64,000 bases of DNA from NCBI RefSeq assembly GCF_001194135.2, contig NC_068982.1:164922225-164986224 (forward strand), given 5' to 3'. This document shows positions 4,409-60,630 of this stretch, one piece after another. Source of the DNA: Octopus bimaculoides (taxonomy: Eukaryota). The position numbers were made by a program, and so were the translations under genes. Every line of letters begins with the position of its first letter. Within the stretch, counting starts at the first letter, position 1. The notes beneath the pieces were generated by a model. That model searched no databases. It saw nothing but the letters and a program-made list of their open reading frames with translations, and had not been told where the DNA came from.

Positions 4409-4476
4409 TTAAATAAAATTAGACGACAAAGACAAGGGTGTGTGAAATTTTCAGGACATTTATAAAGAGAAAGTTA

Positions 4477-9906: not shown

Positions 9907-10072
9907 NNNNNNNNNNNNNNNNNNNNNNNNNNNNNNNNNNNNNNNNNNNNNNNNNNNNNNNNNNNNNNNNNNNNNNNNNNNNNNNNNNNNNNNNNNNNNN
10001 NNNNNNNNNNNNNNNNNNNNNNNNNNNNNNNNNNNNNNNNNNNNNNNNNNNNNNNNNNNNNNNNNNNNNNNN

Positions 10073-10135
<63 letters not shown>

Positions 10136-13100
10136 AGATAGATAGATAGATACATACATACATACATAGGATAATATTTTTTTCTTTCTCTGAATATGCT
10201 TTCTACGTCTGTTTGTGCTTGAAAGTATATGTATTTGTGTGCATGTAAAGAGAAACGCGTATATACTCACAATATTATATATATTATTGGTAATTCAAAA
10301 AGTTGTGGTAATAATTCCACGCTCATCAGAAGTCTACGCAATGAGTTGTCAATTTTGATATTGAAATTATACATTTATCAGTAAAGCAGAGATATATAAG
10401 AAATAATTCAAATAGCAATAATAAATGGCAAATAGAGAATATGTTGTTCTGGGCTTGACAGCTTGTCATTATAAAGATACTCTTGCAGTTGATTAATAAA
10501 CATCGATAAACAACTCGGTTGCAAAATGACAGTACTTTTACATTCATGGACTCGCTCACACACAAATATATATTATAAGCAAGTGCACGCACATGCATAT
10601 ATAATTATGTTTGCGCGTGTTAGTGTGTATATACACACATACACACACACAAACACACACACAGAGAAACACACATATACATACATGTGTGTGTGTATGT
10701 TTGTGTGTTTGTGCGTGTGTATGTGTGTGTGTATGTGCAGTTGTTTATAATTATCTATGTGCGAGAGGGTTGACCTTGCGTGTCCATATGTGTCTGCATT
10801 CTTTATTGATTTGCTTATTGTCACGCTATATTTGAAAGAACGTGCAATTCCTTAGACACAGTCACCGATTAAATTGTGCATACACACAGTGGAATAGGTG
10901 TAATATATAGCGATAAATATTAGCATGCATATCTGCTTGCAGAAATCGCACACAGTATAGAGAGGATATCATATAAACGCATAACGTAATACTTACTGTC
11001 TGAGATATACTGGGGTAAACTTGGAAAAGTGCATTTAAGTAGATCCACTTGTGTACTCACACACACACATAATGCATACATACATACATGTGGGGTGCGC
11101 GCGCGCTGTTATGTTTATATATGTGTGTATGTAAGTGATTTGCATTCACATATCTATACACATATATTCATATGTGTGTGTATAGGTGTCGGAATTGTGA
11201 TGACTTTTGCGCATGTCCACTATATGTTTTTTCTTTATTCCGTGTATACCTTTGTCGTCATCCTGTGCTACATTAACGTGCGTGCATGCATACCTGTGTG
11301 AATTTGTATGTATTTTGGATAAATGTATTTAGTTTGGAGGTGCTTACATGTATTTCCATTTCACTATAATCGCTAAATGTAGAATTTGCCCTCTGCAGCA
11401 AAACAATAACCCATTCCCCAAATTTAACCTCTCTCTAATAATATCAATTAAAACCTGTCATTTCAACCAGAATAAAGTTCATCTCCAATAATTCCACCTT
11501 CTCCAAACTGTTTGATTTAAATCCTGAGTAACTGTCAAAAATATATTGAGTTAAAGAGTGTTTCAACCTATGTTTACACCCACCTAAAGCTTTCAGATAC
11601 CTACACCGTGACTTGGATTTTCAAAGGGGCTACTCACCCCACAACACTCACCCATCCAATCAACCTAATCCTATATAAACTAGACACATTTAATCTCCCC
11701 AACAATTGTGAAGAATCTAGCTCAGGACAAGACCTTGGGTAAATCATCAACTTTTGATATATTGAACAGATGTGCAGCGTGCATGCACACACATATACAC
11801 ACATAAACTCACATACATATATGTATAAATAACACTTTTAATTATCAAACCTGGAGTACTGACAAAATATTCCTCTTCAGAACTAACCGAAATAATAGAA
11901 TAATAGGATATAATAGTTCTCTCGATATACTGTCTTTATTCAACAGAATAATATAATTACTTATACCATTATCATAAAAGTTTACACGACGACCACATAG
12001 AAATATCTATAGCATTCATTTTCTAAATGTATGTTGTTGTATAAACCATTGATACTACAATAGTTTATTCAGGCTTCAGAAGGAAGGTCACCGGCGAATT
12101 GCTATCGAATTTTACTTAAACGTAGGATTAGCTATACACTTGGTAGCATATAATGATCTACCAAATGTTTCAAACATTATAGATACTCCCCTAGAAATTT
12201 TGCGGAACGAATATAACGAAATCAGCTGTTTTTTTTTATGTTCATAAGCAGAACAGCTTGAAGTTTCCTCTTTATGAATTCAGCCGAGTAAACTTGTTTT
12301 TAGATTTTTCTCAACTGCATTTTTCTTTCTAATATCTTTTAGTACTTTCATCTTGAAACTGAATACTCTGGAAATGTATCTGGTGATTCATCTAATATCA
12401 GCATCAACTTCTGACCACTATGGATCACATGGTGTAAAATGGAATTTTGATATAGATACCAATTACAACCAATTAGTGTGTCACTTTACAATTCGTCTGT
12501 GAGGCCTTAATGCTAATCTGATTTTAGTTCCTACTGATCATTTCTACCCAATCAAGCCTACCATATTCGTTCTTATAGTTTACCTTAAACCCGAAACATT
12601 TCAAAATCTATTATCTTATGTATTATTATGTGCGCAAAATAATCCAGCATTGCAAGTGTTTATTATTCACCACAATTAGCGACATGTATGAAACACTCAA
12701 AATTCTTGAGCCTAACTGCAAAACCTTCATTCTGATACGGTAGCTACTTTTTATACTCCACATAGAATTGTTGTTAATTTATGAAAAAATAGGATCATTA
12801 GAGTTTCTCATAGACTATGAAATATTGATAGCATTGACATTTTGCGAACAAGAATTGCTGAGTTAACTCGTAGTATGTAAATGTTCATTTTTTCGCTATT
12901 TTCAAACAACCAGTCGTTTTGTATACGTACCACAATTCGTTTATTCAAATGTTGCATAATATGGGTTCGATGTTTAGTTGGAAATTTCAATCAGATTTTT
13001 AAATTTCGGCAAAGGAATATTGCATTAAAGAAATGCAATAATCCATTTTAAAGAAATAGGAATACACCGCTTTTTATATGCAGTGTCTGTGTCATGAGAT

Positions 13101-14539
13101 GCCATACTCGTAGTATGTCCCACATGAAGTGAAAGTTAATCGCATTCGGTGTTGCATTTCCTGTTTACGCTTATTCTTTCTTTATTGCTTGTATTACGGT
13201 AGTTCATACAGATGAAATGCATGCATATTAAAATTGAAATGTTTGTATCAAAAAGGAAAACAAGAATACAATTACAAGCATACGAATATAGAATATTTAA
13301 CAGAATCTCAAGTTTGGTCCAACAGTTTATGTCAAACTTTCAATAATTACCTTTATAACAGAAAAAAAAAAGAAACAAGAAAAACGATCTATGGCGTACT
13401 GCAGCTAGTAGGAAACACAACTCACCTTCTCACATTACATTGCGCAGTGTGTAAGGGATCATTTGCAAATAATGTTGGAGACTTGCGCTCAATGAACAAC
13501 AAACACACACACATAAGAGGCTAATTTGATTCTGGGACAAGAGCGTGAGAACCGGTAATTGCTGATAACGAATAGGCCGTGCACCAGCACCGTAGAAAAA
13601 TGTAATTAATGTATTATTAAGTGACAAGCTATATAAAATAGAAACAGTGCGTTAAAATGCAATCCAATTATAATGTTGCCCAATTATTTACACTAAGTAA
13701 TAACCTATGATGGCTCTAAATGCTGTTGTGTGATAGCCCAATATTTGTATACAGTCGCTTGGTCTCGTATGCAACTAATAGGATCATAAATATTATATTT
13801 ATTGAATCTCTTGAGGAGAAGCGTCTGTTAAGGGCCTATTAAGTTTGAAAGGAAATATATCTTATAGTCTTAACCTTAATATTTCAGAGTTTTAAAATGA
13901 TGACAGCGTTGCTAGATGCTCATGTAGGAGATATATTTCCAATGGAAGCAATATACATAATAATTATTCTTGGCTGTGAAACTTTAGACTTACGCATTAT
14001 TGATGTATACTACATAGCAAAATATGCTGTAGATATAGTAAAAGTCGACATAATATGTAAACGAAAATTATATTAAGGTTTTATTTAGACTTAAAAAAAA
14101 AATACTAAAACAAATAGCTTTGGTTTAAAAGAATAACATGATCAATACATTATTTTATCGTGAAATATTAAATAACTGTGTCATTTAAATTTCTGTAATG
14201 ATCAAACAGTGTTAATATATTTACCCGTCAAGTGTGCAAACGAAAGTTTTGCAGTCTGCATAGATAGAGCGGGTAGTATTTTCAATTTCATTTGGTATGA
14301 CATAGGTAGAAATAATCTGAAGCATCTGCTCATGATAGACAGTCAAAAGCTTTCTGAAAGCCACAAACAGACGTATAATTCTTTGCTGATATGGCTTCAG
14401 TGAGTTGTTAAAAAGTCAAGATGGGTTCATGTGTGGAACGGTCTTTGCGAAGCCGTTTTGGTTTGATTTGAGTAGCTTTCTGATAGAGTCTCGAATGTTG
14501 AGCTTGAATTCCAATGGAACTTGACTGGTAATATTCGCC

Positions 14540-16180
14540 GAATTTAGAGTCGAATTACCTTATTCTCAAACAGGGTCTACGTGCAGTAAATGAAAAACTA
14601 CGTTATTGTAAAAAATTACATGAACAAAAAAACGATAAACCGAAAGTTTTCCCGAAACCTACAAGCTGTATATCGCAGTATGGAGGGCGGCACCATCAAA
14701 GCAGTAAAGTCTTCTCCCCAGGAAGACCTAGAGTCATTCTGGCGGGGAATATGGAATGTAAACAAAGCACACAACTGCGATGAAACATGGTTAAACACCC
14801 TACGAAGTGAGTAGTGTGTAAATGCCTCTTCCAAAACATACAACATCACCAGTGAAACATTCCTGACGCTTATCATGAAATTGCCGAATGGAAAATCATC
14901 TAGGGGAGACCTGATAGTCGGCTACTAGTATAAAAAGGTCACGTTCTACAGAGAAATTCTTACGAACTCGTTTAAAATAAACAATGGACGATGAGCTAAA
15001 TATACCAGACTGGCTGACGGTTGCATGGACTACTCTTGCCCCAAGAACAAAGAGATCCCTGTGGCCCAAAAATAATTAGAACTAATCACATTAGAGATAA
15101 TTAGAACTAATCACAACATTCTCACGAGTTTGGGCAAGGTAAATGCTTATACATGATAGTCAACCGAGGAATGACTGTCAGCCAGAGGAGAGAAGATGTA
15201 CATCACCAGTTTGACTATCTCCCCTATCTTATATGATGAAAGCTACAAATACCTCGGAATCGATGAGAATGTTGCATACATTTGTGATGTAACTAAGACC
15301 AGAATAACAAAAGAGTACTTTTGTAGACTCCGGAAAATATGGAACTCAGAGCTGACTACATTTAACAAAATGATATTTCACAATGCTTTTGCAGTCCCCG
15401 TGCTAGTACTAACATTTCTGATATTGAAATGGACACTCGAGGAGATACTCAGCCTGGACATGGAAACCAGAACGGTACTGACCACCACGAGCAAATTCCA
15501 CATTAAGTGTGACTCCGATTTACGTGAGACAAAATGATAGCGATAGATGCATAATGTCAGTCCAGACAGCCTTTGAATGTTTCATTGTATCACTCAGACA
15601 GCACCTGTTGAACGGTAAAGAAAGAAATGAGTACTCAAAAGTGAGAGCAACATCTACAGAGGTGGAGAAGAACTACTGTGCAGGTACTCTAAGAATATAA
15701 CTATCTTCTGCAACCCAAAGGAGGCTGTACTGGCCTACCTAAATAGAGATTTAGAGGAGAAGCAGGCTTCATGCCAACAAAAGACAATGCATGGGTACAT
15801 ATCCCGTAAGCTAGAGTAAAACGACATTCACAGGAAGACTAGCCCCTCCTGGACCTGCGATAGATACATTACATTCGACCTCGACGCATATGCCTTCCCC
15901 ATCCAGAAACATATCTATTAAATACCTGATAAACAAGAGGGACAGAGATACTACTACCTTCCGATAAAAAACGTCGGCTCTGCTATACCAGTGTGGACAA
16001 TAACACCCAAATCGACAGCAGCTTCCCCAGAATATCTACGAAATACTACCTGCCTCCTGAGGTATGATACAGTTGCAAAATCTATTTACAATGCTATTAG
16101 TGGAAGGACTGCCTTGACGGATACAGCAAAGGCATGTCAGAAACAGCAGGTATTCACGCCTTTAAAAACAAAGAATACTG
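14540..16180 (+). mobile_element. R4/Dong-clade RLE LINE remnant with RT core deleted
   Basis: INRKFSRNLQAVYRSMEG..LESFWRGIW; PKNKEIPVAQ joined directly to EFGQGKCLYM; YKYLGIDEN..RLRKIWNSEL..NAFAVPVL; decayed CCHC region near 15970-16090. Homologous to 34057-40110. Confidence 0.88.
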
Positions 16181-17324
16181 GTGGACACACTCACACACGC
16201 ACACATTTACGTGTATGTAAATAATATATCTTATAGCTTCGAATATGGTTTAGTCTCATAAGTATATACACATATGCACGCTAGTTTACATGTATATAAC
16301 AGAAAGACAAATAGAGTTATCTTTTATATCCCTTCTCCCTTCATTTTTATCTCCCAATTACCTATGGTTGTATCACAATCATAAATCTATAGGTTCTGTT
16401 TTTGATTTGGTACTGTTGGTAGTAGAGGATGTGGAACAATAACATAACCCAGAGAAAACTGGCAAAGCATATTAAAAAAAAATTATTAGTGGTTTTATTA
16501 AATTTATTAACGAACATAATCTTATTTAAATTTCATACTATGTGAAACAGATTTGAAGTACTAACTTCCACCCATCTTCTTTCACTCAGTCTCTCAAGCC
16601 ACTTTCTCTTCATCTCTCATTCGCTCACCCGCTCAGGCTCTGTGTTTTCATTTTCATTTTCATTCATCCTCTCTTCTACTTTTTATCTATTATACTGTCT
16701 TGGCAGCAGATTAAAGAGCGGAATCTAAATTTCAACAGATAATAACTATTGTTAAATATAAGACTTGCTTTGCTCTATTTATCATATATATATATATATA
16801 TATATATANNNNNNNNNNNNNNNNNNNNNNNNNNNNNNNNNNNNNNNNNNNNNNNNNNNNNNNNNNNNNNNNNNNNNNNNNNNNNNNNNNNNNNNNNNNN
16901 NNNNNNNNNNNNNNNNNNNNNNNNNNNNNNNNNNNNNNNNNNNNNNNNNNNNNNNNNNNNNNNNNNNNNNNNNNNNNNNNNNNNNNNNNNNNNNNNNNNN
17001 NNNNNNNNNNNNNNNNNNNNNNNNNNNNNNNNNNNNNNNNNNNNNNNNNNNNNNNNNNNNNNNNNNNNNNNNNNNNNNNNNNNNNNNNNNNNNNNNNNNN
17101 NATACATACATATACATATATATACACACACATATATGTGTATGTGTGGTGTGTGTGTGTGTGTGATATTGTATACATATAGCATAATATCTCTTTAGAC
17201 ATCTACATTTCTGTTTGTCTTACTAACTATTTGTTTATCTATCTATTTATCTGGCATTCTTCCTGCCCGAGTGTATATATTTCAACAATGTATCTAACTT
17301 TCCCTTACTCAGTGTATGTATGCA

Positions 17325-17890: not shown

Positions 17891-18346
17891 CTTTTTACTC
17901 TTTTACTCTTTTACATGTTTCAGTCATTTGACTGCGGCCATGCTGGAGCACCGCCTTTAGTCGAGCAAATCGACCCTAGGACTTATTCTTTGTAAGCCTA
18001 GTACTTATTCTATCGGTTTCTTTTGCCGAACGGCTAAGTTACGGGGACGTAAACACACCAGCATTGGTTGTCAAGCGATGTTGGGGGGACAAACACAGAC
18101 ACACAAGCATATACACACACATAATATATATATATGCGGCGGGCTTCTTTCAGTTTCCGTCTACCAAATCCACTCACAAGGCTTTGGTCGGCTCGAGGCC
18201 ATAGTAGAAGANNNNNNNNNNCACAAGGCTTTGGTCGGCTCGAGGCCATAGTAGAAGACACTTGCCCAAGGTGCCACGCAGTGGGACTGAAACCGGAACC
18301 ATACGGTTGGTAAGCAAGCTACTTACCACACTGCTACTCCTGCGCC
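17891..18346 (-). mobile_element. tRNA-derived SINE family B (GGCGCAGGAGTGGCTGTGTGGTAAG type), full length, inserted in a (TAA)n array
   Basis: Minus strand: tRNA-like head, GGCACCTTGGGCAAGTGTCTTC core, internal microsatellite, AGTAAAAG-repeat tail; TAA repeats on both sides. Confidence 0.92.

Positions 18347-18405
<59 letters not shown>
18347..18405. repeat. (TAA)n microsatellite
   Basis: About 19 units. Confidence 0.97.
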
Positions 18406-18406
<1 letters not shown>

Positions 18407-26566: not shown

Positions 26567-26732
26567 TCACACACATATATATACGACGGGCTTCTTTCAG
26601 TTTCCGTCTACCAAATCCACTCTCAAGGCTTTGGTCGGTACGAGGCTATAGTAGAAGATACTTGCCCAAGGTGTCACGCAGTGGGACTGAACCCGGAACC
26701 ATGTGGTTGGTATGGAAGCTACTTACCACACA
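26312..26732 (-). mobile_element. tRNA-derived SINE family B with internal (AC)n
   Basis: Colinear with 17891-18346; (CA)n at about 26500-26565. Confidence 0.92.
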
Positions 26733-27163: not shown

Positions 27164-27329
27164 GGATAGATTTACAACGAGCTTCTTTCAGTTTCTTTCT
27201 ACCAAATCCACTCACAACGCTTTGGTCTGCCCGAGATTATAGTAGAAGAAACCGACCCAAGGTGTCACGCAGTGGGACTGAAACCGGAGCCATGCGGTTA
27301 GAAAGCAAGCTTGCCACACAGCCACGCCT
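26825..27329 (-). mobile_element. tRNA-derived SINE family B with internal (GATA)n
   Basis: Colinear with 17891-18346; (GATA)n at about 27067-27170. Confidence 0.9.
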
Positions 27330-30186: not shown

Positions 30187-31725
30187 GTGGGTATTCACGC
30201 ACTCTGTCTTAGTAAATGAGGATCGCTTTCGGACTCTGGTTTAGTCTGTTTTTACAAATAGCTTCTCTAAGCTTCTAGGTGTTTCTGTTCCAGCCAAGCA
30301 CCAGGAAATCAAGGTGAATTACACCATTATCGATCAAAAGATAGTCACGATGAATTTTAATTCGCATCGCTGTCTTTTGAACCTCTTTTGTGTAAACCCT
30401 TTCCATTCACTGGAGCCATCGTTTCTATATCATGAAGATACATCAATATTTCATATCCCGTTACGGGATCGAGAAAAATGTACTTGCGTTAGAATGAAAC
30501 GCTTGCAGCCGGTGAGATAGACTTTGTAGCATGCTCTCCTTCCAACTGAATGTCAACTGCCGACGGCTGAATCGCTGCACTCGCTTTGTATCTGAAAAAC
30601 AGAGGACATCACATAATCGCAGGAATCATAATTGAAAGCGGCGTTGTCCAATTCTCTCTCCCCCCAAAAATAATAAACGTCGCAGTGAGTGAAGTATGGG
30701 GGAAAGGAAATGAACAAATAAATCTACTAATAGCGGTGCCCAAACATTACCTCGGAGTAAGAGAAGTAAAAGCATGTATGTATGTATATATATATATATA
30801 TATATATATNNNNNNNNNNNNNNNNNNNNNNNNNNNNNNNNNNNNNNNNNNNNNNNNNNNNNNNNNNNNNNNNNNNNNNNNNNNNNNNNNNNNNNNNNNN
30901 NNNNNNNNNNNNNNNNNNNNNNNNNNNNNNNNNNNNNNNNNNNNNNNNNNNNNNNNNNNNNNNNNNNNNNNNNNNNNNNNNNNNNNNNNNNNNNNNNNNN
31001 NNNNNNNNNNNNNNNNNNNNNNNNNNNNNNNNNNNNNNNNNNNNNNNNNNNNNNNNNNNNNNNNNNNNNNNNNNNNNNNNNNNNNNNNNNNNNNNNNNNN
31101 NNNNNNNNNNNNNNNNNNNNNNNNNNNNNNNNNNNNNNNNNNNNNNNNNNNNNNNNNNNNNNNNNNNNNNNNNNNNNNNNNNNNNNNNNNNNNNNNNNNN
31201 NNNNNNNNNNNNNNNNNNNNNNNNNNNNNNNNNNNNNNNNNNNNNNNNNNNNNNNNNNNNNNNNNNNNNNNNNNNNNNNNNNNNNNNNNNNNNNNNNNNN
31301 NNNNNNNNNNNNNNNNNNNNNNNNNNNNNNNNNNNNNNNNNNNNNNNNNNNNNNNNNNNNNNNNNNNNNNNNNNNNNNNNNNNNNNNNNNNNNNNNNNNN
31401 NNNNNNNNNNNNNNNNNNNNNNNNNNNNNNNNNNNNNNNNNNNNNNNNNNNNNNNNNNNNNNNNNNNNNNNNNNNNNNNNNNNNNNNNNNNNNNNNNNNN
31501 NNNNNNNNNNNNNNNNNNNNNNNNNNNNNNNNNNNNNNNNNNNNNNNNNNNNNNNNNNNNNNNNNNNNNNNNNNNNNNNNNNNNNNNNNNNNNNNNNNNN
31601 NNTATATATTCAATAATAGGATAAAAATCTATTACAAGAATTTTATCAGGAAGCTAGTGTGTAAAAAAATTCTTAAGGGAAATTTCTATTCCCCAAAATA
31701 TAATTATTCGTTTATATTTATATAA

Positions 31726-33187: not shown

Positions 33188-34056
33188 ATACAAACTATTG
33201 TAGTTTGTTATAGCTGTGATGTCCTTGCAGCATACTTTTCAGGTAAAAAAAAAAAAAACAACTCCCAAGGTTATGATAGTATTTAGACACACAAAGATTG
33301 GTGGAGTGAGGGGGGTGGGGCAGCTAGCTTATTTGGTATTTTATAAGATTTACTACTGGTCGCTTTTAACTATGAATGACGACATAATATAAGAAATAAA
33401 CATTATCTTTACTACCGCTATAACAGCAACATGTCACTAAAATATGAACACAGTTACTCATCCATATTTATATAGAGAGATATATATTTATATATATGCA
33501 TGTATATATATGTTGGTTTTTGTGTAAATTGAGAGAACAAGAGAGGGAAATTTGTGTAAAGGGAGAGCGAGACAAGCAGATAAAGACACAAGAATAATGC
33601 ATATGATGCATTAATAAGTGGCAATTTCAAATTTGTTTCACCAATTAAAAATAAATAATTAGAAAGAATTTTCTTCATAACCAAATCCCTTTTACTTTAT
33701 AAAGAGATGCTGAGTTCTAATTCTTTTCGAAGAGAGGAATTATTGGTGAATTGTAAGGTTTTCATATATTTCTCGAATAAAACTAATTGATTTGCATCTA
33801 CTAAGACCCATGCAGCTTGGGATCAGTTTCACTAAGGGTATGCCGACAAGAACGTAAGAAGTGGGAGTAGATACTGCAAGTCATTTTTTCTACCCATCTA
33901 AAAATTCTACCAATCGATCAGTTAGTACTGCTACTTCATTTATAAACGTCTAAATTATGGAAAGCTAAAATGACGTTTTCCAGATTTGAAATTAGAGACC
34001 AGAGTGCCTGATCGTATACAACTATTCCGACTTATAAATATACATGACATACATAC

Positions 34057-37000
34057 GCGTCGAATTATGGCGTCGAAGTTAGTTACGTCGACATATGGCG
34101 TCGAAGTCAGTTACGTCGTACATTCATCTATCTGTAATGAATACAATCCCGAGAACTTACATGCAGAGAAAAATACTGAAAACAAATTGGTCATCTTCTT
34201 TGGGAAAATGTGACGAAGCACTTTTTTATGGAAGATTATAGCGGAGAAAACTAAATGAAACTCAACAGCTAACTTTACTACTTCTTACACCATCGCAGTA
34301 TAGAAGACGGGTCAGCTATCAAAGGTTGGGGGACTATCGATAGAAATTTGATCTTTGAATTGAACGATATTGAGCCAAATCGATAGAAAACTGGCCGATT
34401 TGATGTTATTCGCGATGAGCCAAAAAGATAAATAAATAAATTAGTAGCAGAGATGGAAAATCTCAAGTTTGGGACATTGACTCTACTGCTATATTATGCT
34501 GTGGTTACAATGCAGCCACAGCAGGAATACAGGGATTGATCACAGGTGAAAGAAAGGAACGAAATGGGTTATCTCCCTCTAGATATATATTGACAGACTC
34601 AGGAAAACTACTGGGCAGCTAGACGCAATTTTTAAGTGAAAAGTGAATAATAAATTCACGATTCAATCACTGCAGCTGTATGATAGGTTACCTGGAGTAT
34701 TTAAGAATTGTTGACAAAAAACTCCAACGGGCAAGTGTGTTGCCCTTAAATACAAATTGCGAAAGTTAAGGGAATTATTTTGTTATGAGAAAAAAGAAAA
34801 AACAACTTCGAGAACCAAAATAATCAAGCACAAACTTGCAATAAATTAACAAGCAGTGTATCCCAGTATGAAAGGCGATTACACCAAGTAATCTAGAATT
34901 ATTGCGAAGAGAAATGTGGAATGTAAATGAACAGCACAATTGAGAGTCAATTTGAGTAAAAGTACTGCGAAAATTTCTGTCTGAAAATTTATAAAATAAA
35001 CAGTAAAATTCTGACTTTTGCTGCAAAAAAGTGTCGAGTGGAAAATCACCTAGGAGAGGCCTGATTGTTGATTATTGGTACAGAAAGTTCACATTACACA
35101 GGACAGCTCCCATTAACCAGTTCAAAAGAACAATGAACAAAGCGATTGACGATGTAGCTGGTTGGTTGACAGTTGCCCGTACAATACTAAAAGTTTAAAT
35201 CAAGCCAAAACCTATGGCCAAAACAGAGAGGCCGATAGCATGCTTGAACGGGAAGCATAAATTATAAACATGTTACTTGAATGCATTCATTCAGCATCAC
35301 TGCGAAATACACAATGCTGTAACTGAAAAGTAGGTAGGGAAATAGAAATATGTATGGAGGTGTATTGAATAGATTCTCATCAACAAAAATGTTCCTAAGA
35401 AAGCTAAGACGTACTGCAGAAAACCGCTGACACCCTGATCCTCCCTCATGGATTATAGAGCCACTACACCTTGTTAAGTTTGCAATTGCTAAAGTTAATA
35501 TCATTGAGTTCCCGGCAACAGCATGATCCTCATAGTTAGCACTAAGTACTGAAGCTACCACTATTGTTAGTAACAGATTTAAGCTACCAACAGAATATTT
35601 CAGAGTGATAGCTTAATTGTGATGATTTTATTTTGCTTAAGCAACAAACCATTAATCAACCCTGTTACGAAAATACATGACAGAGGATGAATTTCACTGA
35701 CACCGTTTTTGTTGATGACCGTAAGTTATTCTCGAGTAATATTCATAAAACCAAGAAACAGAAATGGTGAGAGCATTCTCCAGGTATATAGGAATGGAGT
35801 TTGCTGAGGACAATGGCCTATATATGGTTGTCAAACAAGGAAAGATTGTCAACTAAGAAAGGAATGTAGATATCAATAGCCTTTCTGTCTCCCTTATTAC
35901 CTATGATGAACTTTTACCTTGGAATTGAATATGATATTGCATATGTTGGTGCTGTGAATAAAGCTAGAGTATCAAAATGATATTTCAGAACAAATTTCGG
36001 AATATATGGAATTCAGAGATGTCTGTATTCAATAAATGTGTGCCCTATAGTGCTTTCACAGTGCCATTGCTGGTACCAAAATTTGGGATTTTATACCGAG
36101 CCCTTGATGCAAATCACAATTTAGACATGAAGAAGAAAAAAGATACAAAAACTGGTAATTCTACAACAATGACTCCATCAGGATTTATGTTAAATGGAAG
36201 GATGAAATTATAATCATAAGATAAGTTAAGAGTGCATTTCGGTGCTGTTTTGTGCAACTTCGATTACAACTATTAAAAAGTAAACAGCAAAATAAGTACA
36301 TCAGTAAAGGTAATGTCATCATGATATTAAGCTTAGAACTTCTGATCAAGTATTCCGAGTTTACAACTGATCCGTGTCAATGAAGAGCAGTTGGACTGAC
36401 CTATTTAAACAGAGATATGGAAGAGAAATACTCATCATACAAGGAGGAAGTTATACTTGAGTATTTATCCTACAAGCAAGAGAATATCAGCAACATTGAC
36501 AGGAAGAGTAGCCTCCCCTTGACCTGTGGTAAGTACATTACATCTTACAGGATAGGCTATGCCTTTGCTAGCCAAGAACAAAAGACAGCTGCAATAAACA
36601 TGATCATCAAAAAGATAAGGATGCCTCTAAACATGCACACCGTGATGGAAAGTGTCGATTGTACCATGCCAGGGTGGAGGATGCCATCCAAATCACCCGT
36701 TGCTGTTAAAATACGTTCAGAAGATATTACTTTACCTTGTGACTTGACATTGTTGCTAAGATGCAGTAGATGCATGAAGGTTGTCCTGAAAGTCATACAG
36801 TAGAACCAGGAAAATATCTACGCACTTAAAAACAACACTAATGGAGCAGAGTACTCGCATTCTCTAGATAGCATCGGTCAGAGGAGGACTGGAAATTTGT
36901 AAAACATCTGAAGGTTTCTGTATTTGAAGATTCTCGGTACACACAAGCACACATATTTATGGAATACATATATGTGCACACACGTAAACAGCAATGAAAC

Positions 37001-37752
37001 ATACACTTGTGTTCTGCAATGGAACGCAAACCCAGACGAGTGAAAGTTTATCTACTCATACGCATTACATGCAAGCATCGACTAGTTCAGGTAAATTAAA
37101 ATACACCAAGTGCTCTCTTCACTTAAAGAAAAGCGCCTTCCGACTTTGTTAGTGACCGGCCTGAATTATGCAAAGAGAAAAAAAGCTTAAAATTATGACC
37201 AAAACACATATACTTACCTGCGCACATACATTCATGCAAAATGTGTGCATGATATTACCTACACTTGAGACATTACAAAGTTGCGAAAAATATTTACAAT
37301 ACAGGAAGGTTATTCCTGATGGATGCATCAAAGATATGTCAGAAACAAAATGTCTTTACATCTTCAACATAAAGAGTACCGGTAGAATATACCAGTAAAA
37401 ACAGGAATCCAATGCAAATGCAACCGACCTTATGTTGTTCTGAGAGGCAAAGGACAAAATTTATGCAACACAGAAGAGTTGGCTAGAGATGTTAACGTGC
37501 CATGAAATGTTCAAGACAAGAAGAGCACATACGATGAAAAAATAATCTCGCCATAAATTTTCATTTGTACCTCTTACCACAGGTGCAATAGGGTATGTAA
37601 CAACTTAGAAATCTTTTTATGAAGAGGAATAGAATCTGACGTGCACCCTCCACACCCAATTTATTAGGGTCACAGTGAAAATTTGCAAGGCATATAAAAT
37701 ATTCTCCAGTGGAGATTCCTTAAATTAATACATGCACACACTTGAAAAACTT
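34057..37752 (+). mobile_element. R4-clade RLE LINE copy A, near full length but heavily decayed, with a 525-bp insertion
   Basis: GKSPRRGLIVDYWYRKFT..RPIACLN; PPSWIIEPLHLVK; FVDD region at about 35712; RNIWNSEMSVFNK..AFTVPLLVP; CCHC region 36650-36780; nuclease resumes at about 37365 (NIPVKTGIQCKCNRP); ends in (ACAT)6. The 5' limit (34057-34300) is inferred. Confidence 0.85.
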
Positions 37753-37777
37753 ACATACATACATACATACATACATA

Positions 37778-40110
37778 GAAGGGACCTAAAATTTCGATAT
37801 TGATACAAGAGGCTGATATTTTTATAGAAACCAATTGATATGTATGTTCAAGAGGACTATGGAAGGTCAGACTGATATACCAAATTGGCTTGCTACAACA
37901 AGGACAAATCTTGTTGCCAAAAATGAAATCACTGAGATGGCAGAAAACTACAGGCTCATTGTTTGCCTAAACATTATGTACAAACTGTACGCCGTTGCCT
38001 CAACCAATTCCTCCAGGATCATTATGAGTCAAACAGCATTGTGACTGATGAATAGGCTGATGGAAAGAAGGGAGTGTAGGAACATGCCGAACAACCATTA
38101 ATTAACAAAGCTTTATTGTTTGAAGTAAGAAATCAACGCAGAAACCTTGTGACAGTATTGCTTGGCTATAGAAAAGCTTTTGAATCTATCCGTCATTCAT
38201 GACTGTTGAAGTGCTTACATCTGGTAAAGGTACCTACTATCTTAATTGCTGCTATAAAGAGAATCACAAAGGCACGAAGAACTACTCTTACCCTTACAAC
38301 AGAGAACAGCATAATTGTTTCTAATAGTATAGGCATTACAAAGGGAAAATTTCAAGGAGATAGTTTTTCTATACTTCTTTTCATTTTTGCACTGAATCCA
38401 TTATCGTTTCTATTGCAGAAAACAAATGGTTACATGCCAGGATCTTCAACTGCTAGAAATATCAATGTTATTCATAATTTCATTCTAAACGATTTGATGC
38501 TAAAAAAACAACTGGAATTGATAACATTTTCAGCTGATATAGGCATGGAATTTGGCCAAAAGAAATGTTCATATTTGGTTATAGAACGAGGTAAGTCAGT
38601 CCCCCAAACCCAAATTCAACGGTCTCTCTTTCTCCCCATTCCACACAAAGAATGTTACAAGTACCTAGGCATAGACGAAAATATATCATATGAAGGCTCT
38701 ATGAATACAGATAGAGTGACCCGAGAATATTACACCAGACTTAGGAAAATATGGCAGTCGGAACTCTACTCTTACAACAAAACAATATTTCACAATGCAT
38801 TTGCAGTACAAGTGCTGATCCCAACGTTTGGGATACTTGTTTGGTCTGTCGAGGAAATCCACTCCATAGATATCAAAGCCTGCAAAATCCTGACAAAAAC
38901 TGGGAACTTCCACAGAAACAATGACGTTGACAGGCTCTACCTGAGAAGAAACAAAGGTGGTAGAGGCCTGTAATCAGTGCAGATGGCCTTCGAATACCGT
39001 ATGATATCATCCAGGCAGCACCTGCTGAATAGCAGCAGTAAAAATTAATATATGAATGCAGTCCTGAAAAGTGAAGTGAGCAACATTGTACGAGTTGTCA
39101 GTGAACACCTCAAGAAACACTTTTTTTCCTGATGATCTCCTATGCAGCCCCAAAACAGGTGTGCGCTCTTACCTCAAAGAAGACCTGGATGGAAAGCACA
39201 CAACATACAAAAAAATAAAGACCATGCATGTGTATGTTGCCCGAAAGCTTGAAGAGGACATTAGAATTGACACGAAGCGCAGCCTCTCTTGGACACAAGA
39301 CTACTACATCACATCACACTTTGAAAGCTGTGTTTGCAATCCAGGAACAGGAAATTGTCACAAAGTACCTGGTGAACAAGAGAGACAGTGACACTCTTGT
39401 AATACCAAAGCGCAACCGCATGTGTAGGATATGTCATGTTTCTGTGGAAGCCTTTACCATGTGATTAGTAGCTGTCCTAAATTGTCGTCGCGGTACTACC
39501 TCCATATTCAACACGATGTTGTTGCTAAAACAATTTACAATGCCATCTGTAAAAGAAACTGTTCTGAAATTAACTTAGAAATCCCTCTCCTCTCTTATGG
39601 AATACATTCATAAATACCAACTCACAAATTACTGGTTGAATATTCCCATCAAAACTTCTGACAAATGTAAGCATAACAGGCCGGATATTGTTGTTTATGA
39701 CTGAGGGGCAAAGGTATGTACCATCATGGAGGTTAGCTGCCCTGTAGATACAAATAACTCTTTGGAAATCAAGGAAAAAGAGGGTAGTTATGGACAACTA
39801 CTTCGAAATCGCCAGCTTCTATATCCAGACTATGAATTCATATTCATACGAATAATAATTGGAGCACTAGGTTTTGTTAGTAAATGCTTAAAGGAAAATT
39901 TGAATAAACTTGAATTTTCAGGAAGAGAAAGTGGCCAGTTGATTCGTACATTACAAGTCAAATCTGTGAGTGGAACAATAAAAATATGCAAGAGTTTTCT
40001 CAAGTTCCAAATGTGAAGTTGTCTATGTTAATTACATCCCAAAGATGGAGCCTTGTATCTTTGTTGGAAACCGCGCAGTGAAAGATTTATAATAATCAAA
40101 AATAGAAGAG
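37778..40110 (+). mobile_element. R4-clade RLE LINE copy B, 5'-truncated (RT, CCHC zinc finger, PD-(D/E)XK endonuclease, 3' UTR)
   Basis: ORF 38206-38973 (GKFQGDSFSILLFIFALNPLS, YKYLGIDE, VDRLYLRRNKGGRGL); CRICHVS..HVISSCPKLSSRYYL..HDVVAK; KHNRPDIVVYD; MEVSCPVD..EIKEKEGSYGQL; stop at 40016. Catalytic DD is degraded to ND. Confidence 0.95.
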
Positions 40111-40135
40111 ACATGTATGCATACATACATACATA

Positions 40136-40785
40136 CAAGAGTTGGACAAAATAATGGAAACATTAAAATTTCAAACAAATTCATTTTAATATGGAGTAGG
40201 ACCGCTTTTGGCAGTAATTACAGCTTGAATTCTTCGAGGTATGGACTCGTACAAAGTTTGAGATGTTTCCAAATGAATTTTTGTCCATTCTTCAGCTAAA
40301 ACATTCTCCAGTTCTTGTATTGATGATGGTGGAGGATATCGACTCCTTACTTCTTTTTTCTAAAATGCAACACACATGTTCAATGATATTGTGATCTGAG
40401 GACAGTAATGTCCAGATAAGATGTTCAACTTCACTAGAATGTTCCTCGTGTCATGCAGAAACTTTAACTGTGTGAATTGGTGCATTATCAACCTGAAAGA
40501 TTGCGTTTCTCTCCGGAAACAGTTCCGCAACCATAGGATGAATTTGATTAGATATAATGCTTAAATAGTCTTCACTATTAATTCTGCCATTAAGGGAAAC
40601 CATTGGGCCGGCGGATTTCCAAGATATAGCACCCCAGATCATGACAGATCCTCTTCCATGTTTAACAGTTGGAAGAAGGCAGTAAAGGATGACTCGTCCG
40701 AGAAAATAACATTCTTTCACTGCTCTAGGGACGAATTCTGTAAGATTTTACACCAGTCTAATTCCTCATCTCTTCAATATAGAAC
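40136..40785 (-). mobile_element. Tc1-family DNA transposon 3' half with one TIR
   Basis: Minus ORF LLPTVKHGRGSVMIWGAISW..FQVDNAPIH; IFSDES upstream; TIR TA|CAAGAGTTGGACAAAATAATGGAAAC inserted at a TA within the (CATA)n array. Confidence 0.92.
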
Positions 40786-40786
40786 T

Positions 40787-40798
40787 GTGTTGTTGTTG

Positions 40799-40860
<62 letters not shown>
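40787..40860. repeat. (TTG)n-(TTA)n microsatellite (tail of adjacent SINE)
   Basis: Direct reading. Confidence 0.95.
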
Positions 40861-40864
<4 letters not shown>

Positions 40865-40978
40865 TCACTGCCTGGAATCGAACTCGGAATCTTGGGGTTA
40901 GTAGCGCGCGCTCTTAACCACTGCACCATATGCCCGTGGCACAGTGGTAAACAGCGCTGGCTACTAACCCCCAGATTC
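40857..40978 (-). mobile_element. Short tRNA-derived SINE with (AAT)n tail fused head-to-head with an inverted second head
   Basis: Minus: gggcatatggtgcagtggttaagagcgcgcgctactaaccccaagattccgagttcgattccaggcagtgacctg-AATAAT (A box, B box); 40936-40978 is an inverted head copy. Confidence 0.8.
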
Positions 40979-41024
40979 TGTCTGTCTCTCTATCTGTCTC
41001 TTTCTCCCCTTCTCTCTCTGTAAG

Positions 41025-44212: not shown

Positions 44213-44590
44213 TTGCACCTATTTGTGTTTTGTTATGCACATGATCACACAGTGTTAATTGAGAAAGAAAGCAAACAGTGCTGGATCATAGATATAGCAT
44301 GCCCAGCTGACAACCAGGTATGCGATAAGGAAGAAAGATATGACAGGTTAGCTTGGGAGTTTAAGCAGTTATGGTCGATGAAAAATGTGTTAGTAATGCC
44401 AGTGATTGTCGGAGCCCTGAGAACAGTGAGTAAAAGATCTTGAGAAGTACATAGAACAAATAGGTGCTGCGATAAGGGTGGAGCACTTGCTTGGAACCGC
44501 TCGAATACTCAGGATGGCACTCGAAAAATATGGGGTGTTACTTTAGCTCACCGGTAGTAAAAAGCTGGCACTATAATATATCTCCAGCGT
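44213..44590 (+). mobile_element. Dong-type (R4 clade) LINE 3' end (RLE C-terminus and 3' UTR) followed by (AAT)/(GAT) array
   Basis: CWIIDIACPADNQVCDKEERYDRLAWEFKQLWSMKNVLVMPVIVGALRTVSK..EKYIEQIGAAIRVEHL..GTARILRMALEK; tail caacaacaataaacaataataat. Confidence 0.92.
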
Positions 44591-44666
44591 TAGAAGCTGT
44601 GCAACAACAATAAACAATAATAATAATAAGGATTATGATGATGATGATGATGATGATGATGATAAC

Positions 44667-44715
<49 letters not shown>

Positions 44716-44730
44716 GCAATAATAATAATA
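44590..44730. repeat. (AAT)n/(GAT)n compound microsatellite
   Basis: Direct reading. Confidence 0.96.
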
Positions 44731-44854
44731 CGAAAACTTCAAACCTGTGAGTAAAATTTTAACTGTTAAATACTAGGATTGTTTTCTTTCCAAACAGTCT
44801 AACCTGTTGTATATATATGAATATAACAACAACAAAAACAATAATAATAATAAT

Positions 44855-45820
44855 AAGATTGGTACTGCACACGAAATTGACCGGATAGAAGACCACGATT
44901 GATGCTGCGCACAAAATTGACCGGATGAAAGACTAAGATTATTGCTCCGCTCAAAAGTGACCGGATGGCTGACCAAGATTGGTCCTGCTCCTAAAATTGA
45001 CTGGATGGAATAAAATCCAAGCAGATAATGCACGGGCGATAGCATCACCGGTATAGAGCTGGAATTATAAAATGGCAAAGGAAAGAGTTGATGAAAATGG
45101 ATGCAAAAACAAGAAAAATTTTGACAATACACAGAGCCTTCCACCATAAGTGTGACACCGATATGCTGTACTTGTCCAGAAGAAAGGGTGGGAGAGCTTT
45201 AATCAGTTGCCGGAATTGTATCGAAACAGAGGAAAACAGCTTAGCTTGGTATGTAAAAAAAGGCCGGCGTCATTAAAACTGAGAATTGTGTAATGAAAGA
45301 AAAATTTAAAGAGGAAAAGAACACAAAAAGGAAACAATGTCGAAGTAAAGAAATAAGCGTACAGTTTGCAAGAGATACTAACACCAAGACAGATACAGAA
45401 GACCGGTAGCTCTTGATGAGGAAGAGTGACATGAAGATAGAGACAGATGCACTTATATGCGCAGCTCAAGTACAAGCGTTAAGGACCAACATGTGAAGTG
45501 TAGAATAGACAACACTACCGACAGCAGCAAATGCGGAATATCTGGTGAAACGATATAGCACATTATTAGCGAATGTCCGAAATTGGCACAAAGCAACTAC
45601 AAAAGACGGCATGACAATGTGGCAAGAATGATCCATTGGTGGTCTCTGTGGAGATCACGGCCTACAAACATCAAATACGTGGTATGAGCAAACCCCAGAA
45701 GGAATCACTGAGAATGAGAACTGCAAAATCCTATGGAATGCAATGATTCAGTACGATCACCTAACCAGACATCGGAAACCGGACATTGTTGTGGTGAATA
45801 AAAAAGAAAGAACAACATGA
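44855..45820 (+). mobile_element. Dong-type (R4 clade) LINE internal fragment starting immediately after (AAT)n
   Basis: KMDAKTRKILTIHRAFHHKCDTDMLYLSRRKGGRALISC; ALRTN..SSKCGISGET..IISECPKLAQSNYKRRHDNVARMIHW; WYEQTPEGITENENCKILWNAMIQYDHLTRHRKPDIVVVNKKE. Confidence 0.92.
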
Positions 45821-46031
45821 CTAGAATGAAATCTATACGGAAACCTATTTCCTGCGCAGGCAACAAACTTATATATTGCTTAATCAAGGGGGCTGAGAAC
45901 GTATAAACTTAACAAGTGGGGTGGGTGTGTTTGAGGGCCTGGCTTATGAGCTTACAGTGTTATTTTTGAGTACTTCTTGTGCAAAAGTGAATTACCAAAA
46001 TAGGAAGAAAGAGGGTAGCGGATAACATTTA

Positions 46032-56215: not shown

Positions 56216-57069
56216 GGTGAAGCAGTAGAAAGGAGTAAAAAAAAGGAAGGAATAAATATTTTTTAAAAGTCCATTTATTTTAGTACATTATATTTCAACG
56301 TCGTATTATATATTTTTTGTTTACATCATTGATATAAAGGGTTAAGCATAACTATGAATATTGTGAAATATAAATGAAATAATTTTGAAATCTTGGACTG
56401 TGAGTATGTGTGTATGCATGTGTTTGTGTGTGCGGTTTTTACTGGGAAACAGTTATGGTTTGAACAATATAAACCTGGTCATTGAATAAGTACTACTAAT
56501 ATATATATAATATAAACAGACTTCCTTCTTCTCCGTATATCTTTAGAAATGTTCTATATTCTAAATGAAGTCAAATTATTTGTAACACTGGAGAACACTT
56601 TAATGTATTGTCCGCTCAACTCCAAAAGGATTTCATGCCATAATCTAGTTTGTAGTTGTAAATTTATTTTTCATTTTCTCTCTTACAATTAATAAATATG
56701 ATATGCAAACACTCTTGAACTGAACCCTCCTTAAGCACGAACAACACATAGCTAAGTTCCTCCATAAACACTTGACTTCAAAATCACTGATAACCTTTTC
56801 TCATGTCAATCTCTCATTCATATATATNNNNNNNNNNNNNNNNNNNNNNNNNNNNNNNNNNNNNNNNNNNNNNNNNNNNNNNNNNNNNNNNNNNNNNNNN
56901 NNNNNNNNNNNNNNNNNNNNNNNNNNNNNNNNNNNNNNNNNNNNNNNNNNNNNNNNNNNNNNNNNNNNNNTGTCTGTACATATATATGTATGTATGTGTG
57001 TGTGTGTCTGTGTCTGTGTCTGTGTATGTATGTATGAATGTATGTATGTATGTATGTATGTATGTATGT

Positions 57070-58250
57070 TTGGCTGTGTGATAAAAAGTTTGCTCACAAT
57101 CACATGGTTCCAGGTTCAGTCCTACTGCGTGGCACCTTGATCGAGTCCTATATTATAGCCTTAGGCCGACCAAAGCCTTGTGCGTCGATTTGGAGGACAG
57201 AAACTGAAAAAAGCCCATTGTATATATATATATATACGAAGAGGTACCAAAACGTAAATAGAAACGGTCGCTAGTTCAGGCTTTCGTCGCTAGAAGCTAC
57301 TTTATGCGACCCTCAGGCATCAGTCTGCCTACTGGTTTCATTGTCTGTAGTAGTATTGCCACGTGGTGCGTTTTTGCATTGCAGTGCTTCCTAAAACTGG
57401 CTAAAACTGCTGCCACAAGCAAAGCACAAGTTTACGAGAAGTTTTCCCGCTTTAGGAATGGTCACTTGTCGCTTGAAGAACAATCTTGTACAGGGCGACC
57501 GTAGGCCATCCGAAAGAATGAAAGCATCGCGAAAATTCATGACCTAGTCTTGAAGGAACTTCGCCCAACAATTGACAAACTTGTTAATGAGGTTGGTGTG
57601 TCCTGGAGCACCTTCTACCGAATTTTGAGCGAGGAAGTGCGAATGAAAAGTGTTGCAGGGCAATTTGTGCCTCGCTTGCTCACGGAAGATCAAAAGCAGT
57701 CACGATTGAATGCGTGTCGTGAACTGAAACACTTTTGGAATTGACGTGAACCCTTTTTCAAAGCTCATCACTAGTGACGAAAGCTGATGCTACGGAATTT
57801 GCAAATATGGAAGAGGTCGAGAAAAAAACGACAGAGGCGTTTAAAGGCATTACTTCTTATGAATTACAGGGTTGCTTCGAACAGTGGAAAACTCGTCTAG
57901 ACAGATGCAGGGTTCGAATAGAGAATACTTTGAAGGCGATAAAAGTGTAAACATGTAAAAGTAAGTGAATAAAATAACGTTGCAAAATTACAGTTTCTTT
58001 TGGGTACCCCCTTCTATATATGTATATATTTGCGCGTTTGTATCTGTGTTTGTCGCACTCACCATCACTTGACAACTGATTTGGTGTGTTTATGTACCCG
58101 TAACTTAGCGGTTTGACAAAACGGACCGATAGAATAAGTACTAGGCTTAAAAGGAATAAGTCCTGGGGCGATTTGGTCGACTAAAACCCCTTACGTTGGT
58201 ACTCCAGCATGCATGTTGTTAAGTGACTGAAACTTGTAAAAGAAGAAAAG
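57070..58250 (+). mobile_element. SINE family B split by a mariner insertion
   Basis: 5' half 57070-57236 and 3' half 58017-58250 are colinear with family B; the interruption lies in the internal (TA)n. Confidence 0.88.
57237..58016 (+). mobile_element. Internally deleted mariner transposon with both TIRs
   Basis: TIRs CGAAGAGGTACCAAAA / TTTTGGGTACCCCCTTC, TA flanks; FSRFRNGHLSLEEQSCTGRP..EVGVSWSTFYRILSEEVRMKSVAGQFVPRLLTEDQKQSRL; jumps from the GDE region to the C-terminal CFEQWKTRLDRC..EYFEGD. Confidence 0.92.
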
Positions 58251-60479: not shown

Positions 60480-60630
60480 CAAGCTTCTTTCAGTTTCCGT
60501 CTGCGAAATCTCCTCGAAAGGCTTATGTCCCGAGGTTATAATAGAAGACACGTTCCCAAAGTGCCACGCAGTGGGATTGAACCCAGGATCATGTGGTTAG
60601 GAATCAAATTTATCACCGCACAGCCATGCA
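60480..60630 (-). mobile_element. SINE family B 5' half
   Basis: cttctttcagtttccgtct..gtgccacgcagtgggattgaacccaggatcatgtggtt..caccgcacagccatgc. Confidence 0.85.

Follow-up and report, generated by a model that had tools for sequence, protein, structure and literature searches.

The window, i.e. the 64,000 nucleotides of Octopus bimaculoides DNA analysed here (NC_068982.1), contains two LINE copies, A and B, in tandem on the forward strand, and the Dong-type (R4-group) lineage to which both belong probably inserts, in a single orientation, into (ACAT)n microsatellites. As judged from sequence, specific insertion into ACAT, and not TAA, is the most likely explanation since intact relatives have this repeat on either side; what the families of A and B contribute themselves is one clean 5' junction, that of B, to which the relatives are added. 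To our knowledge (TAA)n is the only microsatellite for which specific insertion by Dong is known, and the searchable literature gave no account of R4/Dong elements that target ACAT or ACTT. Copies A and B themselves are dead relics without function.

Copies A and B and their flanking arrays

Copy A (34057-37751, + strand, the 5' end being putative) is a heavily degraded LINE that tblastn and the tree assign to the ACAT-flanked clade. Its homology to aa 235-1112 of intact relatives covers 34565-37599 and comes in 9 tblastn HSP pieces with 27 in-frame stops; the pieces lie in alternating reading frames, which means that several frameshifts have occurred. A CpG-rich tandem repeat (28 bp x2.3, 34058-34123, TRF) and a segment of ~480 bp without homology (36761-37237) are found inside the element. 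A by-eye N-terminal match at 34137 (MNTIPRTY...) was rejected as evidence, since an HMM search for the N-terminal domain of the relatives gave no significant match in the six-frame translated window.

The original prediction noted a short ACAT run just before copy A. The run, ACATGACATACATAC, is real (34042-34056, + strand, imperfect, with a perfect stretch at 34047-34056) and may be what is left of the target array on the 5' side of A, but the 5' junction of A is unproven: the upstream limit of homology is near 34460-34565, and the chance of a perfect ACAT run of at least 10 nt in any 400-nt interval here is about 10%. When the 5' UTRs of 11 elements were aligned, global conservation was absent and nothing supported this 5' end. 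The conservation seen was confined to subgroup motifs, e.g. GCGCAG..GGACGTGTGGATT in L086/L091 and ACGTCTTTTACCTCA in L003e2/L088e2/L089e3.

Copy B (37778-40119, + strand; translations, tblastn) is a 5'-truncated element that spans aa ~407-1157 of the intact, ~1150-aa relatives. It includes the RT (37820-39117), a frameshift-split CCHC finger (CRIC...H...C, ~39420-39480), the RLE motif RPD...D...EVSCP...K (RPDIVV..D..EVSCP..K, ~39676-39810), a stop codon (40014-40016) and a 3' UTR of ~100 nt to 40119, all on the + strand, the finger and the RLE motif being read from the translation. It is also degraded (10 in-frame stops, 4 tblastn HSP pieces in alternating frames), its YxDD box reads FILND, and the read-through protein scores 23.2 bits against Pfam RVT_1 (E 6e-5), where the curated cut-off is 29.6.

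Both LINEs had been described as followed by ACAT arrays, and TRF finds these with 100% match after the 3' UTR of each degraded element, the ends being refined to 37752-37777, (TACA)6.5, and 40120-40137, (CATA)4.5, both on the + strand. The first array adjoins A on its 3' side and, at the same time, B on its 5' side. In other words, the truncation point of B, at aa ~407, lies directly on the terminal array of A, with the junction at 37778 as predicted. The chance of a junction within 3 nt of an ACAT run of at least 10 nt, as for B, is about 0.1%. The + strand of the window has 16 such runs and the - strand 14, and the remaining ACAT arrays do not adjoin a LINE 3' end. In general, arrays of ACAT, CA and TA are plentiful in the window. 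A Tc1/mariner-like remnant on the - strand, seen in the translation, comes next after the 40120-40137 array.

Relation of the two copies and other fragments in the window

The original prediction treated A and B as two copies of one element. This does not hold: there is no nucleotide similarity outside the microsatellite and the collinear protein identity is about 35-45%, so they represent two families of one clade. A protein database search with B returned 108 homologues, none above 45% identity to the A and B families.

The only further member of the clade in the window is copy C (14611-16200, + strand, tblastn), which corresponds to aa ~309-1046, less an internally deleted part; having lost its 3' end, it is uninformative on junctions. 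A TAA-targeting relative had also been proposed at 44-46 kb. Two fragments are found there on the + strand, D1 (44252-44730), a C-terminal RLE fragment with its 3' UTR, the last part of which (44603-44730) is an (ATG)n/(AAT)38 array, and D2 (44840-45830), which comprises (AAT)5.7, a 40-bp x3.9 tandem repeat and a Dong fragment truncated at both the 5' and the 3' side (aa ~770-1046). The best tblastx matches of both are TAA-flanked loci, and the proposal is borne out in that these TAA-associated fragments are closest to the TAA-flanked group.

Protein architecture and phylogeny

Copy B and the intact relatives share the order RT, CCHC zinc knuckle and PD-(D/E)xK restriction-like endonuclease, which in the relatives is encoded by a single ORF; an APE domain is absent from the A/B-type elements, which have the C-terminal RLE instead. 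The intact relatives score 81-94 bits against RVT_1, well over the cut-off of 29.6, and about 13-22 bits against zf-RVT, i.e. under the cut-off of 27.5. They also match R2 cryo-EM proteins from the RT through the zinc knuckle (aa 345-1019 of P0003).

The relatives have in addition an N-terminal domain of ~80 aa that is homologous between the ACAT/ACTT and the TAA groups. AlphaFold models it as a confident three-helix bundle (pLDDT 81). Pfam gave no match to this domain in the intact relatives, and even the best PDB matches lacked significance (E = 3.4 for a SANT domain). A diverged N-terminal Myb/SANT-like domain without zinc fingers is characteristic of the R4/Dong clade (PMC7998251).

An HDV-like self-cleaving ribozyme would be expected at the exact 5' end of a Dong/R4 element (PMC3774820). 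Rfam detected none in five full-length relatives, nor between 33 and 47 kb of the window. The Rfam matches seen at 5' ends were miRNA models on repeats and were considered spurious. A custom double-pseudoknot descriptor gave no convincing candidate and was dropped as too unspecific, since it also matched 18% of shuffled sequences.

In its RT an R4/Dong element would be expected to group with R4 (U29445), Dong (L08889) and Rex6, and not with R2, NeSL, CRE or HERO. The phylogenetic tree covered window copies A and B, the ACAT/ACTT relatives and the TAA-flanked group. All ACAT/ACTT elements fall into one clade with A and B at 100% bootstrap. Within this clade the ACAT elements form a basal grade and the ACTT elements are nested inside. 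The sister of the clade is a large (TAA)n-flanked group, at an identity of about 27-30%. The flanking motif (ACAT, ACTT or TAA) follows the phylogeny and not the host locus.

The assignment of the two LINEs to RLE elements of the Dong/R4 kind agrees with this picture, i.e. with RT, CCHC and RLE and with the TAA-flanked sister group. Together with the shared N-terminal domain, that sister group would favour R4/Dong over HERO. In octopus, the overwhelming majority of RLE LINEs are annotated as Dong-R4 (PMC13282606). The view of ACAT targeting as a cephalopod innovation is not supported: ACAT-flanked elements are present in at least 7 other assemblies, and they make up the basal grade of a clade to which the ACTT offshoot also belongs.

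Junctions of related elements

The junctions were surveyed in 18 related elements, all from assemblies other than the source genome, and no repeats in common between these relatives and the window were found. All 5' junctions seen but one adjoin the tetranucleotide array that is also present at the 3' end, the exception being L088 e1, which has no cognate array at its 5' junction. The 5' motif equals the 3' motif in 13 of the 13 elements with both junctions clearly seen. The distance between array and element is 0-3 nt, and the motif is in the sense orientation at both ends.

ACAT stands directly at both ends of five full-length relatives (L001, L004, L085, L086 and L091). In four of these (L004, L085, L086 and L091) the contig starts and finishes in ACAT, with an intact ORF of 1083-1158 aa in between. 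We note that short-read contigs which start and finish in a repeat are collapsed consensus sequences and not single loci; L005, with its cognate 5' array, is likewise a collapsed multi-copy contig. In L001 the arrays measure 66 units on the 5' side and 34.5 units on the 3' side. An ACAT array is seen at the 3' end of L087, and L090 e1 is a shortened copy that begins right after (ACAT)6; as the arrays of L090 are short and degenerate, it was included in the count with caution only. ACTT is found at both ends of L002 (21.5 units on the 5' side), L003e2, L005, L088e2, L089e2 (5'-truncated) and L089e3. L003 element 3 was not accepted as a separate insertion, since it belongs to a segmental duplication (99% identical) into which the flank extends. 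The distant relatives, an outgroup with 30-37% identity, have (TAA)n on both sides, and (AAT)n occurs downstream and directly upstream of 5'-truncated copies, as published for Dong (PMC3812793, PMC7998251). ACAT and ACTT types are found together in sample ERZ25878469, each with families of its own.

As to what reads the target, a possible, though doubtful, explanation is that an ACAU tail of the element RNA anneals to nicked (ACAT)n while the nicking itself is loosely specific, so that a change of the tail would switch the target. This would fit a difference between ACAT and ACTT of one base per unit, the nesting of the ACTT families in the ACAT grade, the presence of both types in the one sample, and the N-terminal domain of L001, an ACAT element that is very close to ACTT-type elements in this region. 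It would also fit the 3' junction phase, which differs among the ACAT elements. The 5' junction phase, however, is identical in 3 of the 3 ACTT elements examined (...CTTACTTA|), which suggests a defined cleavage position, and R2-group proteins bind their targets through N-terminal domains (PMC7998251; also established for R2).

Many LINE clades carry simple-repeat tails of their own making. An account in which the RT makes (ACAT)n at its own 3' end, the sites are otherwise unspecific and the run before A is due to chance is nevertheless unlikely. It draws on the fact that the 5' array of B is in fact the 3' array of A, and that the run before A is short, with its chance of about 10%. It leaves the 5' arrays of the relatives unexplained and is disfavoured on this ground. 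Long cognate arrays lie upstream of the full-length L001 and L002, and no LINE 3' end is found upstream of them, so they are not tails of upstream copies. Cognate arrays also occur at the 5' ends of the collapsed multi-copy contigs L004, L085, L086, L091 and L005, and 5'-truncated copies begin on the array (window B, L089e2, L090e1 and many TAA-type loci), for B with the chance of about 0.1% given above. The original prediction that the array is a target rather than merely a tail is supported by the five full-length relatives with (ACAT)n at both ends and by the 5' end of B on the array.

Finally, under a passive association the elements would insert anywhere and survive or accumulate in microsatellite-rich, low-recombination DNA, or the arrays would have grown later from short ACAT-like end motifs. 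For Drosophila Waldo-A/B a passive build-up next to CA repeats has been proposed (PMC3812793), and a passive association would suit the array-rich window, but we consider it highly improbable given the exact junctions (0-3 nt), the same sense-orientation motif at both ends, a motif that follows phylogeny and not host locus, and one sample in which two motif types have separate families.

Proposed mechanism of insertion

Under specific insertion into ACAT, a pre-existing array in the window would have been struck at least twice, or B would have inserted into the array that remained on the 3' side of A. The insertions would have split the array into the remnants at 37752-37777, 40120-40137 and, uncertainly, 34042-34056. 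If Dong and R2 are a guide, the protein of the single ORF (DNA-binding-like domain of three helices at the N-terminus, then RT, CCHC and RLE) would nick the repeat and reverse transcription of the element RNA would start from the nick (TPRT). The RNA presumably ends in ACAU repeats able to pair with the target, and incomplete reverse transcription could yield 5'-truncated copies such as B. Besides the endonuclease, which the original prediction named as what was retargeted, the N-terminal three-helix domain and the annealing of the RNA tail are candidate readers of the target on an equal footing. Counting against specific insertion are the frequency of ACAT runs in the source genome, the L088 e1 junction and the 5' HDV-like ribozyme that was not found.

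A wider scenario, which we regard as evenly balanced, is a widespread and still-active Dong-type sublineage that moved from (TAA)n to tetranucleotides, with ACAT ancestral, one or two switches to ACTT, and both types coexisting in one genome. The step from ACAT to ACTT is a single-base change per repeat unit.

In that scenario the ACAT/ACTT clade would be a natural series for the study of what sets target choice in RLE LINEs, be it the three-helix domain at the N-terminus, the endonuclease or the tail of the RNA. As a sister clade with two tetranucleotide targets one base apart, it would provide matched intact pairs for mapping target-recognition determinants in R2-group retrotransposons. This question is now of practical weight because R2-type elements are under development for site-specific DNA insertion (PMC13586686, PMC13580325). 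Such a clade would also explain in part the association of LINEs with ACAT arrays in repeat-rich genomes such as that of octopus, in which Dong-R4 families are abundant and have been active recently (PMC13282606).

Comparison with known systems

A close parallel is Dong (R4 clade, RLE), which in Bombyx mori, Anopheles, Biomphalaria and others is specific for (TAA)n and, as a consequence of insertion into the microsatellite, is flanked by the repeat on both sides (PMC3812793, PMC7998251). The A/B clade resembles it in the single ORF, the RT, the C-terminal CCHC, the RLE, the small N-terminal domain, predicted to be helical, and the lack of N-terminal zinc fingers, as well as in probable orientation-specific microsatellite insertion and in 5'-truncated and tandem copies. 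It differs in being flanked by ACAT, or ACTT in the nested sublineage, in forming a separate clade (100% bootstrap, about 27-30% identical to the TAA-flanked group), and in the 5' HDV-like ribozyme, which was not detected in five full-length relatives or at 33-47 kb.

R2 provides the closest solved structures (9nl3, 9dou, 8gh6) and the same layout of RT, thumb/linker, CCHC and RLE, with TPRT presumed. However, R2 has N-terminal zinc-finger and Myb domains and a single rDNA site, whereas the A/B clade is without zinc fingers and its probable target is a microsatellite. Togen (NeSL group, (TG)n) and some HERO families are, as the A/B clade would be, RLE LINEs that target simple repeats (PMC4640811), but they belong to other clades and use other repeats.

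Waldo (R1 clade) is specific for (ACAY)n in Anopheles and Forficula (PMC3812793); with its targeting thus documented, the parallel drawn in the original prediction is a fair one. The class of target repeat is the same as in the A/B clade, but Waldo has an APE endonuclease in place of the RLE and belongs to a different LINE group. The resemblance is convergent and not by descent, i.e. if specific insertion is true, an RLE LINE and an APE LINE have converged on ACAY-type repeats.

Elements and arrays in the window

The related elements in other public assemblies, together with the junctions of element B, give good support to a Dong-type lineage that would be specific for ACAT repeats, as the original prediction held. 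The trait is not confined to the window's organism; relatives in other public assemblies show it as well. For the families of the two window elements themselves, i.e. A (ending at 37751) and B (37778-40119), both on the forward strand, the in-window basis for ACAT specificity is thin.

The arrays match their earlier description. Tandem Repeats Finder reports two perfect arrays, (TACA)6.5 at 37752-37777 and (CATA)4.5 at 40120-40137, and the string ACATGACATACATAC is found at 34042-34056. Since N runs (assembly gaps) adjoin microsatellites at 10070-10150, 16810-17100, 30650-30780, 56960-56970 and elsewhere in the window, the array lengths are lower bounds.

The conceptual translation of B runs from a reverse transcriptase through a frameshift-split CCHC finger (CRIC...H...SSC) to RPDIVV..D..EVSCP..K, the motif of a restriction-like endonuclease (RLE). 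Translation stops at 40014-40016, and about 100 nt of 3' UTR separate this codon from the array. B spans residues ~407-1157 of intact relatives and is therefore 5'-truncated. It is also dead, with 10 stops over 4 HSP pieces in alternating reading frames and a YxDD box that reads FILND; the RVT_1 match of its degraded read-through protein is under the Pfam cut-off. The probability that a junction lies by chance within 3 nt of a perfect ACAT run of at least 10 nt, as the 5' end of B does, is about 0.1%. Directly 3' of the terminal (CATA)4.5 there is a degraded Tc1/mariner-like transposase on the reverse strand (~40150-41000; motifs HGRGSVMIWG, FQVDNAPIH and LYESIPRRIQAV), which probably bounds or truncates this array.

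Element A is likewise dead (27 in-frame stops over 9 HSP pieces, the reading frames alternating). It spans residues 235-1112 of intact relatives at 34565-37599, with a homology-free stretch of ~480 bp inside it (36761-37237). The 5' end placed at 34057 is not established: homology to the relatives is detectable only from ~34460-34565, and a profile search of the whole window with their conserved N-terminal domain gave no significant match. Perfect ACAT runs of at least 10 nt occur 16 times on the forward and 14 times on the reverse strand of this window, and any 400-nt interval has a ~10% chance of containing one. At the putative 5' end of A we note a CpG-rich 28-bp tandem repeat (2.3 units of CGTCGACATATGGCGTCGAAGTCAGTTA, 34058-34123) that may serve the 5' UTR as a promoter or in processing; CpG-rich ACGTCG/GCGCAG motifs also stand right after the microsatellite at the start of several full-length relatives.

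The blastn match between A and B consists of the microsatellite only, and tblastx gives collinear similarity of ~35-45%. The two are thus not copies of one element, as had been thought, but two families of one clade, arranged head to tail. The first observation stands, corrected on two points: the identity of the two elements, and the 5' end of A, which is not established.

Fragment C (14611-16200, forward strand) is a further member of the ACAT/ACTT clade; short stretches of its nucleotide sequence match A and B at ~80% identity. It breaks off at ~16185, ahead of an assembly gap, without its 3' end, and a search within the window found no other copy informative on junctions. On its 5' side, C borders a fragment resembling an RT (..GFQKAFDCL.., ~14300-14560) that lies on the reverse strand. 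No LINE end adjoins the ACAT arrays of the window other than those at A and B. The TAA-targeting relative predicted at 44-46 kb corresponds to two forward-strand Dong-type fragments (44252-44730 and 44840-45830) that adjoin (AAT)n arrays and have their best matches in the TAA group, so the ACAT and TAA types coexist in this genome too. A 40-bp tandem repeat (3.9 units, 44855-45010) separates an (AAT)5.7 array from the second, truncated fragment.

The window also holds five copies of a SINE-like family of ~150 nt (57070-57225 on the reverse strand, 26579-26709, 27170-27294, 18141-18331 and 60483-60626), in which ARAGORN found no tRNA head. One copy has an (ACAT)n tail (57023-57069), one an (ATA)19.7 tail (18348-18406) and the others no simple-repeat tail; (TA)n, (GATA)n or (CA)n stands just 5' of most copies. 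The family may be a non-autonomous partner of the ACAT- and TAA-type Dong LINEs.

Protein organization

The protein layout is R2-like; among solved structures, the R2 proteins 9nl3 and 9dou come closest, in alignments that cover residues 345-1019. N-terminal zinc fingers are absent. Instead, there is a conserved N-terminal domain of ~80 residues, whose ACAT/ACTT-group and TAA-group versions are homologous and which is predicted with good confidence (pLDDT 81) to be a three-helix bundle. Its best structural matches, a SANT domain among them, are not significant; the prediction is compatible with the Myb/SANT-like assignment that HHpred gave in PMC7998251, but falls short of confirming it.

Repeats at the junctions of the relatives

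The relatives were drawn, with their genomic flanks, from 91 loci obtained by 11 exact-protein look-ups and one metagenome scan. The intact relatives (1083-1158 aa) are at most 45% identical. Among the intact proteins are P0003, P0005 and P0009 of the ACAT type and, in an ACTT-type cluster, P0132 (1149 aa); the call P0004 spans just the C-terminal 680 aa of its element. In the full-length element of L001, (ACAT)66 ends exactly at the 5' end and (ACAT)34.5 begins at the 3' end. In four loci with an intact ORF of 1083-1158 aa (L004, L085, L086 and L091) the contig both begins and ends in (ACAT)n; the L087 contig, which begins within the 5' UTR, carries the 3' array, and a shortened copy (L090 e1) begins right after (ACAT)6. 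The same arrangement is seen with ACTT (= CTTA) flanks in L002, L003 e2, L005, L088 e2, L089 e3 and the 5'-truncated L089 e2. No LINE end lies upstream of the 5' arrays of L001 and L002, meaning that no upstream copy left them behind as its tail. In 13 of the 13 elements with both junctions clearly seen, the 5' motif is that of the 3' end, which favours reading the ACAT array as target rather than tail.

The sole 5' junction without the cognate repeat is that of a 5'-truncated ACTT-type element (L088 e1, 2350-2700 of its locus), fused at its 5' end to a co-oriented fragment of an unrelated LINE reverse transcriptase, possibly as a chimera made by template switching. L003 e3 was left out as an independent insertion, being a segmental duplication. 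In L001 a single unique sequence of ~60 nt, with (GATA)n before it, occurs twice, ahead of the 5' ACAT array and beyond the 3' one (4445-4505 and 8807-8870), so this element is part of a larger unit that is repeated or satellite-like.

By analogy with the family, insertion would start with a nick in the repeat, followed by target-primed reverse transcription. In the original prediction, a retargeted endonuclease would account for the choice of ACAT. That the terminal repeats of the element RNA pair with the target repeat and thereby set target choice is a live alternative, since one base per unit separates ACAT from ACTT and the N-terminal domain of L001 (ACAT) is very close to those of ACTT-type elements. 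Against it, the 5' junctions share a single phase (...CTTACTTA|) in all three ACTT elements examined, a hint that cleavage occurs at a defined position. As to the repeat being the target, each short-read contig is the collapsed consensus of a family with many copies (8-12 members per cluster), so the repeat at their 5' ends is present in most copies. A tail-only model, in which the element makes the array itself, is disfavoured because it predicts neither the 5' arrays, nor the motif agreement, nor these contig ends.

Phylogeny and probable target order

The more distant relatives from the metagenome scan (30-37% identity) are followed by (AAT)n, i.e. (TAA)n. Many of the 5'-truncated copies (L041, L042, L046, L055, L056, L060, L073 and L080) and the tandem L029 also have a TAA repeat directly upstream.

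Neighbour-joining trees were built from residues 200-1150, projected onto the intact ACAT-type protein P0003, and rooted on the TAA group. All ACAT- and ACTT-flanked elements, A and B included, group together in a single clade (100% bootstrap) that is separate from the TAA-flanked group. The ACAT elements make up a basal grade (L090 e1/L006; L091/L086, 98%; L087; L085/L004; A/B; L090 e2/L001), and the ACTT elements two nested subclades (80% and 85%); deeper branching within the clade has weak support. On these sequences the most parsimonious order of targets would be TAA, then ACAT, then ACTT, the last step taken once or twice. One sample, ERZ25878469, has families of both kinds, ACAT (L001) and ACTT (L089).

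Comparison with known systems

In octopus, Dong-R4 LINEs are known to be numerous and to have been active recently (PMC13282606, PMC8967140); these papers do not mention ACAT or ACTT targeting, nor did a search of full-text papers return any mention of it for RLE LINEs. Dong and R4 carry an HDV-like 5' ribozyme (PMC3774820); Rfam detected none in five full-length relatives or at 33-47 kb of the window, and a custom descriptor was too unspecific to be used. Microsatellite targets are known in some HERO families (PMC4640811), and flanking by a TAA repeat is the published behaviour of Dong (PMC3812793, PMC7998251). By architecture and behaviour the elements probably belong to R4/Dong, HERO being a less likely alternative. 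In both respects they are like Dong, but the target of Dong itself is TAA, which the ACAT and ACTT elements do not share.
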